This document shows, piece after piece, positions 51,881 to 61,562 of a DNA stretch of 63,488 bases. Position numbers and translations under genes: made by a program. Source of the DNA: Dimorphilus gyrociliatus (taxonomy: Eukaryota; Animalia; Annelida). Numbering within the stretch: position 1 is the first letter of the stretch; every line of letters begins with the position of its first letter. The stretch covers positions 1-63,488 of the forward strand of contig CAJFCJ010000062.1 in the NCBI GenBank assembly GCA_904063045.1. Reading direction: 5' to 3'. The notes below the pieces were generated by a model. The model was not told the origin of the DNA and ran no database searches. It worked only from the letters and a program-made list of their open reading frames with translations.

Positions 51881-54511
51881 CTATGAATATTTCTCTGATA
51901 GTTTAACACTCGAATGAGGTTTGTGCAATTCAAATATATAAATATGGTTCTGTCCGGGGAACATGAATGATTCGGATATAAATAATCTAGTCTGAGGTCC
52001 CCGATTCCAGTATCTGCCAATTATTTTTGAATTAACCATTACCAGTCCCCTATTCCAGTGTTTCATATCGATATATGTATCGTGAGGTCTGCCGATTATC
52101 ATAATAGATATCTTGAACAACGATGGCGCCTCCATTTTTCCGTGAAAGAATTCCCAATTTTTCGAATAATTCAACATTTTTGCAAACTTCTACTCAATTT
52201 TGGATTTTAAAGTGTGGTATTTCTCTTTTAATTGATGTTTGTTCTTTTTTTTTACTAGTTTAATATTTAAATAATAAACACCACACAAAAAAATCCAACC
52301 TCGTTAAAATTCAAGTTTCCTATCTTATAACCAATTAATTGCACGTTGTTAATTAATACACGACCTCTTAAGCCTTTCCTTTGATCGTTCAATCTTGATG
52401 GTGCGTAAACTCTTCCGCAATTTTCAATAAATATATCTAAAATGTTACTCTTCTCCAAAGTCACTTTGTCCAGTCTTACGGGTTTACTAAGTATTGCTAC
52501 AATGTTGTCAACTTTTTGTAACGTTTTGTTGTTTATAATAACTAAACCGTAATCATGAAGGGCCCCGATAAAGTTCATTTCCTTTCCTCTCATAAATGTT
52601 GTCCTGTAAATAATATATCCGAAATCGTATCCCATAACTTCCATGGGAAGAACGTCTCTCTTCGATGTCATCGTTGGTCTTTTAAAGTATCGCCGAGCTA
52701 TTAAATTTATGTAAATATTTCATGAGGGAGGGAGGCAGTTGGTGTATTTGTATGTGTGCGTGTGCGTGTGTGTGTGTGTCTGTGTGTATGTGTGAATGTG
52801 TGTATGCATGTGTGTGTATTTATATATACACGTGTAGGTGTGCTGTTTTTGTTTTCCTTTTCTCTCATTTTTCCCTTATAGTAAACGAATTTGAGTTAAA
52901 GAGAAAGCAAAAATCTTATGCTTATACGCATATGTATATGCAAATATACATACACGCATCCACCTATCGACGCACCAACCCATACTCACACCTATACTAG
53001 TTTAAATTTAGTAATGATAATTATTATTGTGGATGAATTGTTCGGCGTCACTTTAAAATATCAATAATGCTCTGGTAAGGCATATAGCTAGTTATTTCAT
53101 ATTTCCCATAATTTCTGGAAGGATAATTTAAAGGTGGTGGAGGACCTCCGTCAACAGAAATTTTTGTATCTTTAAGAGCCGATCTGATAACAAAATATTT
53201 CTGTTCGTATTCTCCACTTTCAGTAACTGGTGCATCGGAGAAAAAGGTCGTCAAGTCGAACTGAAGTTGAGAGTCTGTATAATTAATTGCGCCCGAATTA
53301 AATCCATAATTCGTCCCTCCGATAAACGGATGGAAAACAAACGAAGTTCCTAAAACAACGCTTCTATAAAGTCTGTTTCTAAATTCGGTAAGGTTCAATT
53401 GCTCGTATTTCATTGCCCATTTCATGTTATGAGCAGTTGGTAGGGCCATAAGAAGAACGGGAACATCTGGTTGAATAGATCTTAACTTTACGACAGCCGA
53501 AGTTATATCTTCATGAGGAGAATCGATTAGTAGACATTTAATCGTTTGAGGGACTCGATCTCGGCCAATAAAATTTACACGATCTGCCAGAAATATTATC
53601 TCGTCTAAACTATTCTTTCGAAATTGAATAACGAGAAAATTCAAATAAGTATCATCTTTGAGATATAGACCAAAACCGTGTTCAACTTGAAAAGCTATTA
53701 TTGGCCCTCCATAGAAAGAGTATACATATGGGAAAATATCGTCTATTAACGCCTGCATATAACTTCTAACTGGATTTAAAAAAGTTTCGTTCGAAGATCT
53801 AATTTTATGTTTAATATTTTCCTTTAAAAGCCACGAAGGTAAACCACCCCAATCCAATCCATTCTCTACAAAGGGTCCAACTTGAAGAATTACATAAAGT
53901 TTTAGGCTCTTTATCATCTCTAAGAAATTCTTAAGCGAGGTGAAATTCTTTTTGCCCTTGATTCTTTCGTGAATATTCCAAGGTACAGGAAAGACGACCG
54001 TGTTTAAACCGGCAGCCTTCATTTTAAGTAATCGATCATACCAACTAGATTCAGGAGTTCGAAAGTAGTGAAAAGTTCCTGAAAGAGTTTTAAAAAAAGT
54101 TTATCAGTAAATTCTTCTCAGAGATATTTATGTAGAGCTGATATAAAGGAAAACAGGAGAATTGAACAAACCTCCTGCAATTCTGAATGGTTGCTGGTCA
54201 AAGAGAAACTCATTTCCTTCAGCTGTTAAACCTTTATGTGCCCTAGGAGGAAGCTTTCTTGTGGTAGGAATTCTTGAAGTAGTAGACGGTGGCGGTGGTT
54301 GGGTAACATCTTGAGCTAATAGAATGTGGTCTACACCTCCCTGACGTTTTCTGGCTTCGGGAAGAATCTCAATGTCCTTTTGCCATGAGTAAGTAACCGG
54401 TTCGTAGTCTTCTTCTCGATAAGAGTCCAAGAAGATATTAAAAAAGAACCAGGCGGCTGTCACGAACAGGGTGAATCTAATAAATTTTTTTAGAGTTTTT
54501 GTTCGCACCAT
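51881..54511 (-). CDS. GH35 beta-galactosidase-1-like protein with N-terminal membrane anchor, predicted catalytically inactive, about 684 aa; exons 54511-54172, 54078-53052, about 52678-52300, 52189-51881
   Basis: GH35 motifs GTFHYFRTP, KMKAAGLNTV...VPWNIHE, WGGLPSWLL, YGGPIIAFQVE, GGTNYGFNSGA, DTYIDMKHWNRGLVMVN...GRYW..GPQ. The acceptor of exon 3 is uncertain. Confidence 0.88.
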
Positions 54512-55229: not shown

Positions 55230-57570
55230 TTAATCAACATGAACCACACTGTAAATTTTTCGCACAAACCAGAAAGATGCCAAGAATCCTATTGTTCCAG
55301 TTAAAATGAAGAATAGGAACGTCATAATAAACGTATAACCAAAATAGAGAAAAGTGCTTACAAAAGTGTTAATCTGTAGCTTACTAGAATAGTAATGAAT
55401 GGAATATATAAAGAAATAGAAAGCGGTAAAGCCAGATGTGAAAAATGAACGCCACCACCAATGATAGTCCTCAGCGCACAAGTGAAAGTAGCACAAAAGT
55501 ATCGTTGCTTCAGAACATGTTACGAGAAGTATAACGAAAACAAGTAGGAGGAACCCAAACATGTAGTAGGTTTCGTGAGACCATATCGAATTAAGGATGA
55601 AGAAAAGTTGAATAAATATGCATCCGAAAGGTAAAATTCCACCCATAACAATCCCGGGCAGGGGACGAGTGTAGAACGATTGATCTGGAATTTGACGAGG
55701 GATCTGATTTGTTCTTACTGGGTGTTCAATGGCCTGAAGATAATTTTAATAGCGTTAAAAAAGTTTTTTAATCTCATTAAACATTCAAAACAAATTCGAA
55801 ATTCTCTACTTACTTTCTTTTTAAATCCAAAATATGCGCCAACGAAGCTCAAAGGTACAGATATACCAAACCATAACGCCAATAGAGCTATTAGCGTAGT
55901 AAATGGAACTGCAGCAGAACTTCCTTCACCCCACATAATCAAATTTAGCACGAAAAAAACTCCAAAGGTAATTCCTGGTACTAGGAATGCGGTTAGAAGG
56001 ACATTTGATTTCCATTTTTCACCTCCAAACATCTTATATATTCTGGCACTTACAAATCCGGCTGGTGTACCCAAACAAACGTATAATACAAGAACGCACG
56101 TCATTAATGAACCACGGTTGGCCGGTGAAAGAAATCCAAGGCATGCAAACAAAAGGGTTATAACAACCATACAGATAATTTGAATTCCATTTCCAACAAA
56201 AACTGAGAGAATCATTCCCTTACGAGGTGATCTAAAAACATCGCCGTGAACTAGTTTCCATCCAAATTCTTCTCTAGCATCTTCAGAATTATCCAATTGG
56301 TTATATCTTGCAATATCTTTGTGTAAAGTTCTCAGCATTATCATAGCTACCATACCAGATAAAAATAAAACAATTACAAGAGAGTTCATAATTGAAAACC
56401 ATTGAATATTGGAATGTGGCATAGATTCTAATATATAATCCCATCTGCTTGACCACTTTACTGTGTTATTTTCTACAAATGTAACAGAATACGTATAACT
56501 AATCTTAACGTCATTATCTGTATTTTTAAAGCCAAAAGTTGGTAGAGAGTCGCCTCCACCTTCGCAATATGGGACTCCATTCGCATCATGATGATGCTTT
56601 ACACTCCGTGGGATTATTTTTGCCTTAATTAGTCGTCCACCAGGAGTACCACTGAGGCTTTTTCCCCAGTCTTCTTTTTCACCATTATGATATTCAATAA
56701 TAATATCAACATGATTAAACAAATAAAATGTGTTTGCTTGACTATACGAGTTAGACGACGAGCAATGGTCCATTCCCTTGCCATTTTTGTTTACATAGCA
56801 ACCAACAGGAAATCCAGTTGTGCAAAATGGTTTACCACCAGCAGTATTGTAACACCAAGCTAGAGGCATATTATCAATAATCCAATGATGTTTATAATGT
56901 TTCAAGATAGCTTGTTGGAGGAATTTTAACTTTTTATCATCATCTTTCTTCTGTCTACTATACGTTTTAGTACAGAGATGTTGACATTTTTCCGTCTTAT
57001 TGAATTTAAGCTGTTAATAGAGAATATAAAAAGATCAAATCAACGGTTGTTCTTGTAAAAACTAAATTAAAAGTTAAATAAGTAACTATTGAACAAAACA
57101 TTACTCACTTGATAAGGTGATGGTCTTATTCTCTCGCCAAATACGACCTGGCCTAAATTTTCTACAGGAGATTCTTTGTTAATAACGTCTTTCGGCGCTT
57201 GACAAAAATCGAAGCTAAAATAATTCAAATAATGAAATTTTTACAGTGAAACAACACAATATAACTTGAGAGAAAATTATTAAAAATGTTTTATCTATAA
57301 AATAATAATTACGCTGTATATTCAAAAGGTAGAACCGAATATACTGAATCCAGACGATTCACGTAAAGCTTTATATCAGACTGTCATAAATTAATAATGT
57401 AAGTAGTTATTAGATTTTTTTATAACAATAAAAAATTGTTCGAAGAAGACACTTACTTTGCATTTCTCTCCCTTGTTGCAATAAGTAACAGGTGCTAACC
57501 CGGGTAAATAGAATGCAGCAACGCTACCTAATAATGTTAATAGCCAACAGGCATTTATGAGTTTGTTCAT
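55230..57570 (-). CDS. TM9SF2: Transmembrane 9 superfamily member 2 (nonaspanin), about 662 aa; exons 57570-57457, 57380-57313, 57214-57109, 57010-55814, 55733-55230
   Basis: [80 protein letters not shown]-terminal KIYSVVHVD; phases consistent. Confidence 0.95.
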
Positions 57571-58690: not shown

Positions 58691-61562
58691 ATGGCCGGCA
58701 TGAAATTCGAATATGATGAAAAAGGTGGAACGTTTTATTACTTCCTCATTTCTTTCTATGTTTTGGTGCTGATTCCTGCCACCTATTATGGATGGTTATT
58801 TATTCGAAAAAAGGGTTGGTAAATACCTATCAATATGGATGATTTTGCTAAAACAATATGTTTCATGTTCTTCTCTTTAGAAAATAAAGAAGTTTCGGAA
58901 AAGGACTGTAGGTGTTTACCTTGTTTAAATAAAGAGAAGCTACTGGAAACCACTCAACCAAAACAAAAAGTTAAACGACCATTAGTGTTAGTAATTTTAA
59001 TTAAAAATCCCTCCCTCCATGGTCTCTAATATTCAACAGAATGAGAAAAACAATGCTAACAGTGTTTTTCTCCACTTGATAAAAAATATATAAAGATTAT
59101 ATTATTGTTTTCTTTCTCATTTTCAATTCTAAAAATAATCTTAATTATAATTATAGAAATTATATTCCACTTTCTCTTTTTACAGCATTATATTGTTAAT
59201 AATTGGATGGAGCATATTCTTTTTCCTGGCCTATAAAACATCACAAATTGAATTAGACTATTCGGAATATGACCCTTACACAATATTGGAATTGGAAAGA
59301 GTAAATATATACATATAAATGCCTTATTACATACATTTTAATCAATTCTTAGTTTTCTAAATGCGGATAATTTCATTATTATTTTTTCAGGGATCGTCAG
59401 TTAAGGAGATTAAATCTCAATATCGCAAACTAAGTAAAAAACACCATCCTGATAAAGGGGGAGACCACAAAACTTTTATGAAAATTGCTAAAGCGTATGC
59501 AGCTCTGACAGACGAAGAGTCTCGTAAGAATTGGGAGGAATATGGAAATCCTGATGGACCTACAGCTACAAATTTTGGTATTGCGTTACCAATCTGGATT
59601 GTAGAAAAGCAAAACTCTATGTGGGTTTTAGGATTATACGCTCTCGTTTTTATGATTATTTTACCCGTTGTCGTTGGTACTTGGTGGTATCGTTCAATTC
59701 AATTTAGTGGAGACCAAGTACTTTTGGACACTATGAAATTTTATGGGCAATTTTTTAGTAGAACACCTAATATGACTCTGAAAAGAATTTTAATGATATT
59801 AGGCGGCAGCTTTGAATTTTCTAAATTCTATAACAAGGATATCATTGACAGAGAATCGGATAATATAGAAATACCTCAATTGATGAAAGAATTACCTAAT
59901 CTTAATGAAAAGAATAAGGAAAAGCCATTTAATCTATCTTATAGTTTGAAAGCTAGAGCTTTAATTCACGCTCATTTGGGTAGAATATCCCTTCCTCCTA
60001 CAACGTTAGAGAATGATAAAAACTACGTTTTAGGAAAGTCATTAAATCTGGTCAATGAAATGATAAAAGTGATTACTCAAGTTATTAGTTATTTCAAAAC
60101 GACGCCAGATATGCAACTAAAGCTCCAAGATTGAACACTGTTGAATATTGTATAAAAATTTGTCAAATGTTAGTTCAAGCCTGTGGGATACAAAAAGTCC
60201 TTGCTGCAATTACCCATATAACGAAAAACGCTATCCATTTTGTAACGAAACGTAGATGTATAAAGACAATTAAACAATTTGTAGAAATGAAAAGTAAAGA
60301 AAGACGAGCGTTATTAAGAACCTTAAGTGATGCTGAATATAGGTAAGATTTTTAACAATTTTTCCATTACTTAATATTTTTTTAGAATTAATTAATTAAT
60401 TGTTTAAAATTTTTGTTATTCTTTTTTAAATAGAGACGTGATGAATGTTTGCGCAAGAATGCGATATAGATTTAAAAGCGGAGGTTGCCGTTAACGATGA
60501 AGAGGATAATTCAATTACTGCAAATTCTATTGTAACAGTTCGTGTGATTCTAGAAAGAAAACATTAGAACCAAATGAGAGTGATGAAGAAGATGAGAAAA
60601 GAGAAGACGCTGGAGATAAGATGGAAGAAGAAAGGAAAAAGTTGATGAAAAACAAAACCTTTGTGGCAGAAAGCTCAGAAAACGAAAAAGAAAAAGCTAA
60701 AAAGCCGAAAAGCAGGTAAAAAATATCTTAAAGAATATAAAATCTTTATTCAAACTATACTGTTTCTTCTGTACATTTAGGAACACGCACGGTTCTTGTA
60801 CCTGTTGTGAATAGAACAGAAAAGCTCGCTGAGGTAGCATCGAAGATAAAATAAAGAAAAAAGATGAGAATGAGAGTGGGGCAAGTGATGAAAGTGATAA
60901 GATTCGAAGACAGTCCAGAAGCAAAGAGATCACAAAACAATGAAAAGAAGGAAGACAATGACAGTGATTCAGTAGATGATGCAAATGATTCTGAAGAAAA
61001 TAATGAGGACGATAACGAGGAAGAGGATTGGGTAGGAAAATTTTCAGACGAAAGAAGAAAGAGAATTCCTTTGAAACTAAATCAAAAGAAACTCATTTAG
61101 TTCATTGTCCTATTATCCGTTAGATAAATACGAATGGTGGTACCTATACGTAGCAGATAAAAAAAACAGCAGCTCATTTCTATGCCTAAGCATGTTCAAA
61201 GTTTAAAAGATTATGAGGAAGTGGAGTTACAATTCGCGGCTCCTACAAAGCCTGATGTATATACTATTCTGTTTGTTTAATGAGCGATTCTTACATGAGT
61301 TTCGACTAACCAAAACATAAAGGTAAAGATTTTTATATCAGAAATTTATGTAGAAAAATTATTTTATGCGACTCTTAAAAAAGTTGTAAGCAGAATTATG
61401 TACACTTTTTGTTTTCTTAACCACAGTTGGATGTTAAAAAAGCTAAGCAAGTCCTTGATCATCCTCAATGGCAGAAAATCGACGAAGACGAGGGCAAAGA
61501 AATTCAAGTAATGACGATGAAGATTCCTCAGATAATGATGACTATGATGATTCGATGACTAA
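58691..61562 (+). CDS. SEC63: Translocation protein SEC63 (DNAJC23); exons 58691-58814, 58881-58986, 59186-59300, 59391-60342, 60434-60715, 60781-61322, 61427-about 61562; 3' half carries multiple apparent sequencing frameshifts
   Basis: MAGMKFEYDEKGGTFYYF, J-domain YRKLSKKHHPDKGGD, NWEEYGNPDGP, FGIALPIWIV, KARALIHAHL. Sec63-domain fragments (WDTKSP/LLQLPHI, EWWYLYVAD, MSDSYM, DHPQW) are recoverable only by frame switching after about 60120. Confidence 0.93.

Follow-up and report, generated by a model that had tools for sequence, protein, structure and literature searches.

A membrane-anchored GH35 gene of the annelid Dimorphilus gyrociliatus as a probable pseudo-beta-galactosidase

The window analysed here is a stretch of 63,488 nucleotides from the annelid Dimorphilus gyrociliatus (contig CAJFCJ010000062.1 of assembly GCA_904063045.1), AT-rich DNA (32% GC) of eukaryotic type whose minus strand carries, from 54511 to 51881, a four-exon gene of glycoside hydrolase family 35 (GH35) that we call copy A. 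The product of this gene lacks both catalytic glutamates of human GLB1, together with the side chains that contact galactose, and the gene is under strong constraint. We are highly confident that copy A is dead as a galactosidase yet functional. That it acts as a scaffold or by binding a partner is a more tentative proposal, and, blending the two judgements, we consider it probable that copy A encodes a selected, non-catalytic, membrane-anchored pseudo-beta-galactosidase on the GH35 fold with such a role. Four proteins are compared throughout—i.e., copy A, its orthologue in a related dinophilid species (P0001), a second D. gyrociliatus protein that is probably its paralogue (copy B; P0017), and the counterpart of copy B in the related species (P0193)—and these are referred to below as the dead proteins.

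The loss of catalytic residues emerges from a direct comparison with human GLB1 (structure 3thc), to which exon 2 of copy A aligns in HMMER with an E-value of 7.7e-45 and free of gaps at both catalytic sites; residue placements agree in a MAFFT alignment. Near-invariant family anchors on either side (G123-G124-P and P206...W220) make the register of this alignment unambiguous. In GLB1, E188 is the acid/base, the Asn-Glu motif (N187-E188) lies at the end of beta-4, E268 is the nucleophile, Y83 and E129 hydrogen-bond galactose, N187 binds the C2-OH, and Y270 orients E268 (PMC6566704). At E188, E268, Y83, E129, N187, and Y270, copy A has G, A, P, G, H, and P, respectively, such that QVENEYG is paired with QVEHGFG and GLB1 PLINSEFYTGWLDHW with copy A PVLLMALPTAHNMKW. 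All four dead proteins share the Gly at E129, where Glu is found in 93% of the family. The initial annotation had read Gly at E188, Ala at E268, and GPFVENGL in place of GPYICAEW from the letters, and the ungapped alignment bears out each of these at the codons it had named. Two further positions, Y306 and Y333, which we take to be galactose contacts in the GLB1 structure, are H and S in copy A (H/N and S/A/P, respectively, across the dead proteins).

These changes fall disproportionately on functional residues. Among 61 columns conserved at ≥85% across 111 relatives, copy A keeps 44 and changes 17, and all six of the catalytic or sugar-binding residues known from the literature that lie in this set are among those changed (Fisher p = 2e-4). 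Copy A also fails the PROSITE PS01182 signature, G-G-P-[LIVM](2)-x(2)-Q-x-E-N-E-[FY] (PMC3103743), from which GGPIIAFQVEHGF departs at N and E; some live relatives miss the G-G-P part, and only the E-N-E core is diagnostic. Sequence and fold thus place copy A in GH35, but the acid/base, the nucleophile, the signature, and the galactose contacts of an active galactosidase are missing.

The fold itself appears to be preserved. An AlphaFold2 model of exon 2 reached a pLDDT of 94.3 and a pTM of 0.92, and its best Foldseek match was human GLB1 (3thc_A; TM 0.87, rmsd 2.0 Å). In the model, Gly134 directly follows strand 126-133 (beta-4) and Ala211 lies within strand 208-213 (beta-7). A structural comparison with human GLB1, as the initial annotation had proposed, thus predicts a GLB1-like fold with Gly134 and Ala211 at the positions of the catalytic glutamates, so, as modelled, copy A would keep the fold and lose the catalytic chemistry.

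Copy A has few close relatives. An exhaustive search of 1.84 billion cluster representatives returned two close clusters only, P0001 (79% identical) and P0017 (51%); all others were at ≤38% identity, and these are almost all catalytically intact. A feature search of the ESM Atlas gave generic bacterial GH35 clusters only, and a metagenome scan with a 29-nt word from exon 2 found no match. P0001 is the copy A orthologue in a related dinophilid species (Logan assemblies SRR23372229 and SRR23372228), in which contig L001 carries exons 2-4 with introns 2 and 3, and the acceptor of intron 1, at the same positions as in the window. Exon 1 of the orthologue lies on a second contig from the same two runs (L007:3470-3808; 73% identity, first 13 residues identical, same donor phase), where TM9SF2 is followed by copy A exon 1, i.e., the gene order of the window. 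Exon 3 is the best conserved part of copy A (83% identity to the orthologue, 55% to P0017), exon 4 is 78% identical to the orthologue, and the stem is the least conserved part across both species and paralogues. At L001:2060-2075, the acceptor of the last intron seems to add one codon (Gln) relative to the window gene.

The second close relative, P0017, is GenBank CAD5125489.1, a D. gyrociliatus protein of 711 aa encoded by an intronless gene of 2136 nt at a locus with a GC content of 0.324 (0.321 in the window). We rejected it as a copy A orthologue in view of its intronless gene and the occurrence of both types in the related species: P0193, from the same runs as P0001, is likewise intronless and 76% identical to P0017. 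Copy B is therefore probably a paralogue residing in the same genome as copy A. The idea that copy B is a retrocopy was rejected as unsupported, since a live D. gyrociliatus paralogue, P0018, is also intronless. None of the four proteins (copy A, its orthologue, and the two copies of the paralogue) retains either glutamate, and their genes all have intact frames, which upholds the earlier view that this is a dedicated gene.

A maximum-likelihood tree of 36 GH35 domains recovered the dead proteins as ((window, P0001) 100/100, (P0017, P0193) 100/99) 100/100. The stem of this clade is the longest branch of the tree at 1.67 changes per site, and its end branches measure 0.09-0.15. The dead clade joins live annelid enzymes (Owenia, Capitella, and Dimorphilus P0018) at 94/89, a node that is not starred, and this combined group sits inside a 32-row, 100/100 clade that excludes GLB1 and holds bat GLB1L2 (P0037, as named by its source). 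The replacements Y83P, R121Q, E129G, Y270P, N304V, and D332F are common to all four dead proteins and place the dismantling of the active site before the A/B duplication, which is itself older than the split of the two species.

The live paralogue in the D. gyrociliatus assembly (P0018; CAD5115321.1) has all catalytic residues. An in-frame ATG lies 39 codons upstream of its annotated start (L006:1384-1500, on CAJFCJ010000006.1) and would extend the protein by a basic tail and a hydrophobic stretch (FTCFMFCLICIYYLIY) resembling a signal anchor; with the anchor supplied from this ATG, we rejected the notion that P0018 lacks one. A similar N-terminal anchor is found in most live relatives and in mammalian GLB1L2. 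The presence of the anchor in live relatives makes it ancestral rather than an invention of copy A, and the notion that anchoring is special to this gene does not stand.

The dead genes are as constrained as their housekeeping neighbour. With counts summed exon by exon, copy A gave a pN of 0.124, a pS of 0.738, and a pN/pS of 0.17 in exons 2-4 (569 codons, versus L001), and 0.140, 0.731, and 0.19 in exon 1 (112 codons); for the copy B pair (711 codons), the values were 0.147, 0.692, and 0.21, with a corrected omega of ~0.085. The control, the large exon of TM9SF2 in the same species pair (353 codons), gave 0.138, 0.666, and 0.21. Synonymous sites of copy A are too near saturation to correct, and omega is ≤0.08 where correction works. 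That the dead genes match TM9SF2 excludes decay, and the comparison with an orthologue that the initial annotation had suggested thus yielded ratios (pN/pS ~0.17-0.19) that are not near 1.

The gene model rests on open reading frames joined across GT-AG introns, which give 2049 nt or 683 codons (the initial annotation had put the frame at about 684 aa) with the stop at 51883-51881 and the GT donor of exon 1 at 54171 (Table 1). Exon-by-exon colinearity with full-length P0017, beginning with exon 1 against residues 1-115, supports this model. Pfam assigns Glyco_hydro_35 (PF01301; E-value 1.9e-60; score 205.6 bits, cut-off 27) to exon 2, BetaGal_ABD_1 (7e-14) to exon 3, and BetaGal_gal-bd (4.4e-15) to exon 4.

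Ahead of the barrel, hydropathy, flanking charges, and translation agree with the basic N-tail, transmembrane helix, and Pro/Thr-rich stem described earlier. Specifically, residues 10-28 have a Kyte-Doolittle 19-residue mean of 1.77, a basic N flank, and an acidic C flank (DSYREEDYE), and no small-residue cleavage motif is present after this hydrophobic stretch. These features predict a type II, signal-anchored topology, which the orthologue shares. The NYT sequon fits a luminal or extracellular domain, and from this architecture we infer a Golgi or cell-surface location.

Table 1. Parts of copy A and neighbouring genes, in positions of the window.
Feature	Position	Strand	Description
Exon 1	54172..54511	-	113 codons + 1 base; start codon, cytoplasmic tail, membrane helix, stem, first GH35 strand
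Tail and hydrophobic segment	54428..54511	-	Basic tail MVRTKTLKK and residues 10-28; predicted type II signal anchor
Stem	54236..54316	-	Pro/Thr/Ser-rich (AQDVTQPPPPSTTSRIPTTRKLPPRAH), from translation
Intron 1	54079..54171	-	GT...AG, 93 nt, phase 1
Exon 2	53052..54078	-	Entire GH35 TIM-barrel domain; colinear with P0017 residues 117-466
Sugar-binding segment	53855..53878	-	GPFVENGL for GPYICAEW; Gly at sugar-binding E129
Acid/base site	53675..53683	-	E-H-G for E-N-E, inside GGPIIAFQVEHGFG; His at N187, Gly at E188
Nucleophile site	53444..53446	-	Ala at E268, inside PVLLMALPTAHNMKW
Sequon NYT	53276..53284	-	Kept in 4/4 dead proteins
Intron 2	52679..53051	-	Phase 2
Microsatellite	52740-52850		CA-rich, inside intron 2
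Exon 3	52300..52678	-	First all-beta domain, BetaGal_ABD_1; colinear with P0017 residues 475-600
Sequon NKT	52522-52530	-	Exon 3; kept in 4/4 dead proteins
Intron 3	52187..52299	-	Phase 0
Exon 4	51881..52186	-	C-terminal beta-sandwich, BetaGal_gal-bd, and stop; colinear with P0017 residues 602-703
Aquaporin-like exons	47058-48260	-	
Syntaxin-6	49917-51302	+	
TM9SF2	55230-56905	-	718 bp upstream of the GH35 start
DnaJ/Sec63-like exon	59361-60134	+	

We suggest the following history and mode of action. In the lineage of the Dinophiliformia annelids, a membrane-anchored, GLB1L2-like beta-galactosidase would have been duplicated, and one copy would have lost both catalytic glutamates and its galactose-contacting side chains in a single burst. 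A second duplication would then have produced the four-exon copy A and the intronless copy B (CAD5125489.1), both evolving slowly since. The signal anchor would fix the protein in the membrane such that most of it lies in the secretory lumen or at the outer face of the cell, where (and this is a guess) it may serve as a binding or scaffold subunit through the preserved surfaces of its barrel and beta-sandwiches, with neither hydrolysis nor canonical recognition of galactose.

Several observations weigh against this reading. The topology of copy A is a prediction from hydropathy, and the sole hint of RNA is a coral metatranscriptome with 22% of the sampled words. In addition, the replaced pocket residues P30, Q65, G73, P213, V247, and F279 are invariant among the dead proteins and could mean a new ligand site. 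E132 (GLB1 E186), which is kept, and position 71 (E/E/N/D) are candidates for a substitute carboxylate. Neither the full-length copy A product nor a protein identical to TM9SF2 is among the public protein search matches, and exact look-ups of three window open reading frames found no identical protein; this region may be unannotated or merged into one long model.

How the former pocket has evolved among the dead proteins bears on what else copy A might be. Of all domain columns, 43% are invariant among the four; the proportion is 39 of 44 for the family-conserved columns that copy A keeps, which indicates a core still under constraint, 8 of 17 for those it changes, and 6 of 12 for the active-site positions. 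Positions 133, 134, 211, 216, 249, and 280 vary, with G/G/G/S at the acid/base, A/S/N/N at the nucleophile, H/A/P/F at W273, and H/H/D/N at N187. The old centre now evolves like average surface, a pattern that speaks against both a new catalytic centre and a conserved sugar subsite. Given the six fixed replacements, there is still some room for a new ligand.

One alternative is a glycan-binding lectin, i.e., a membrane lectin or cargo receptor whose remodelled cleft binds a carbohydrate, perhaps not galactose. Glycan-binding pseudoglycosidases are a known class (e.g., YKL-39; PMC7828330), six replaced pocket positions are invariant, and the beta-sandwich domains are intact and the most conserved part of the protein. 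However, Y83, E129, N187, and Y270 (PMC6566704) have given way, in most cases to Gly, Pro, Ala, Val, or Phe, as have the further GLB1 contacts Y306 and Y333, several pocket positions vary as listed above, and the changed family-conserved columns are no more conserved than average (8/17 versus 43%). The lectin proposed in the initial annotation is therefore weakened, by the replaced galactose contacts and the drift of the old catalytic positions; we consider it rather unlikely in general, and a galactose lectin using the old pocket is unlikely as well.

Less plausible still is that copy A regulates or anchors its live paralogue P0018, in the manner of HPSE2 versus HPSE1. The fully equipped P0018 does exist in the D. 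gyrociliatus assembly, GLB1 is generally known to form oligomers (as in the title of PDB 7kdv), and dead paralogues that counteract an active relative have been described (PMC12406646). Yet P0018, being probably self-anchored from its upstream ATG, needs no anchoring partner, and we regard such a partnership as improbable.

We give very little weight to the prospect that copy A is still an enzyme, whether it relies on different residues for catalysis, is assisted by its substrate, or carries out a reaction other than hydrolysis. Some proteins of glycoside hydrolase folds are generally known to work minus one catalytic residue (e.g., myrosinase), the A copies have a His beside the lost acid/base, three of the four dead proteins carry an acidic residue at position 71, and E132 persists; against this, neither catalytic residue survives, the entire −1 subsite has been lost, and the would-be substitutes differ between paralogues (H/H/D/N and E/E/N/D, and A/S/N/N at the nucleophile position). 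A decaying or unexpressed pseudogene left open by chance, to which the missing full-length protein match might point, is hardly credible given intact frames in four genes of two species, conserved splice sites and gene order, and a pN/pS (~0.17, with synonymous sites near saturation) equal to that of TM9SF2.

Partial losses of catalytic residues occur elsewhere in GH35. Within an annelid-rich clade, Paralvinella palmiformis (P0019; KAK2151313.1) and two metagenomic proteins (P0063 and P0102), all N-terminally anchored, show independent losses of the nucleophile only (Gly, Leu). A mammalian clade of proteins named beta-galactosidase-1-like protein 2 (P0064, P0071, P0199, P0200, P0205, P0207, and P0211; from golden mole, lemming, bank vole, gerbil, hedgehog, hippopotamus, sloth, and armadillo) keeps ENE and has Val or Leu at the nucleophile, together with Y83H in six of seven (Tyr in hedgehog P0199), R121C (Ser in P0199), E129D, Y270T, and W273S. 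The tree gives this clade an intact protein as its sister and puts it next to GLB1L2, and from its sequences it looks like a conserved GH35 protein without a nucleophile. Among bacteria, P0109/P0167 (from a Verrucomicrobiaceae metagenome-assembled genome) and P0057 read ENGYA, with Gly at the acid/base and the nucleophile kept.

The recurrence of nucleophile-less copies in Paralvinella, the metagenomic proteins, and the mammalian "GLB1L2-like" clade underlies a broader speculation, which we put forward as something of a long shot: membrane-anchored GH35 proteins of the GLB1L2 type may also perform a task that is not enzymatic (e.g., binding a partner protein at the Golgi or the cell surface), and animals may repeatedly have released copies for that task alone. 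If so, the worm genes would have gone furthest in this direction, towards a GH35-based receptor or regulator comparable to Klotho.

Pseudoglycosidases have been described from the GH18, GH1, GH13-like, GH33, and GH79 families, and a full-text literature search combining GH35 with pseudoenzyme found no paper. Though lineage-restricted, the dead GH35 genes make a clean case—two paralogues in each of two species, with both glutamates and the sugar subsite gone, the fold kept, and strong constraint—and the dead and live paralogues of this small-genome annelid form a tractable pair for pseudoenzyme research. They also hint at non-catalytic roles in the poorly understood GLB1L2/GLB1L3 family, for which the published work consulted reports expression, not biochemical function. 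Copy A resembles that family in its N-terminal hydrophobic anchor, stem, GH35 barrel, and two beta domains, and it falls with bat GLB1L2 in the non-GLB1 animal clade (100/100). However, GLB1L2 keeps ENE and the nucleophile Glu, copy A keeps neither, and the dead clade stands on its branch of 1.67 changes per site.

With GLB1, its best structural match (3thc, TM 0.87), copy A shares the three-domain layout, but GLB1 is soluble, acts in the lysosome, and has both E188 and E268. Its elastin-binding splice form is also a non-catalytic product of a GH35 gene, made by alternative splicing of an active one; the dead, membrane-anchored protein here, on the contrary, comes from a separate and permanently inactive gene that exists as two paralogues. 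A likeness in layout outside GH35 may be drawn with 4F2hc/rBAT (SLC3, GH13-like), type II glycoproteins with a short tail, one helix, and a large ectodomain of glycosidase fold. The ectodomain of 4F2hc is non-catalytic, and 4F2hc serves as a partner subunit, disulfide-linked to a transporter light chain through a juxtamembrane Cys. Copy A shares this type II layout with a glycosidase-fold ectodomain and differs in fold family; the juxtamembrane Cys is missing, as the 113 residues of its exon 1 include no Cys at all and P0017 has none before residue 117.

Among other animal pseudoglycosidases, Klotho (GH1) is membrane-anchored and non-catalytic and works as a receptor scaffold, with a peptide bound in what was once its sugar pocket (PMC7828330), though it belongs to another GH family and has type I topology and tandem domains. 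YKL-39 and YKL-40 (GH18) were likewise selected as pseudoglycosidases after the loss of catalytic residues (PMC7828330). The YKL proteins are secreted and kept their sugar-binding residues, whereas copy A is anchored and has replaced its own.

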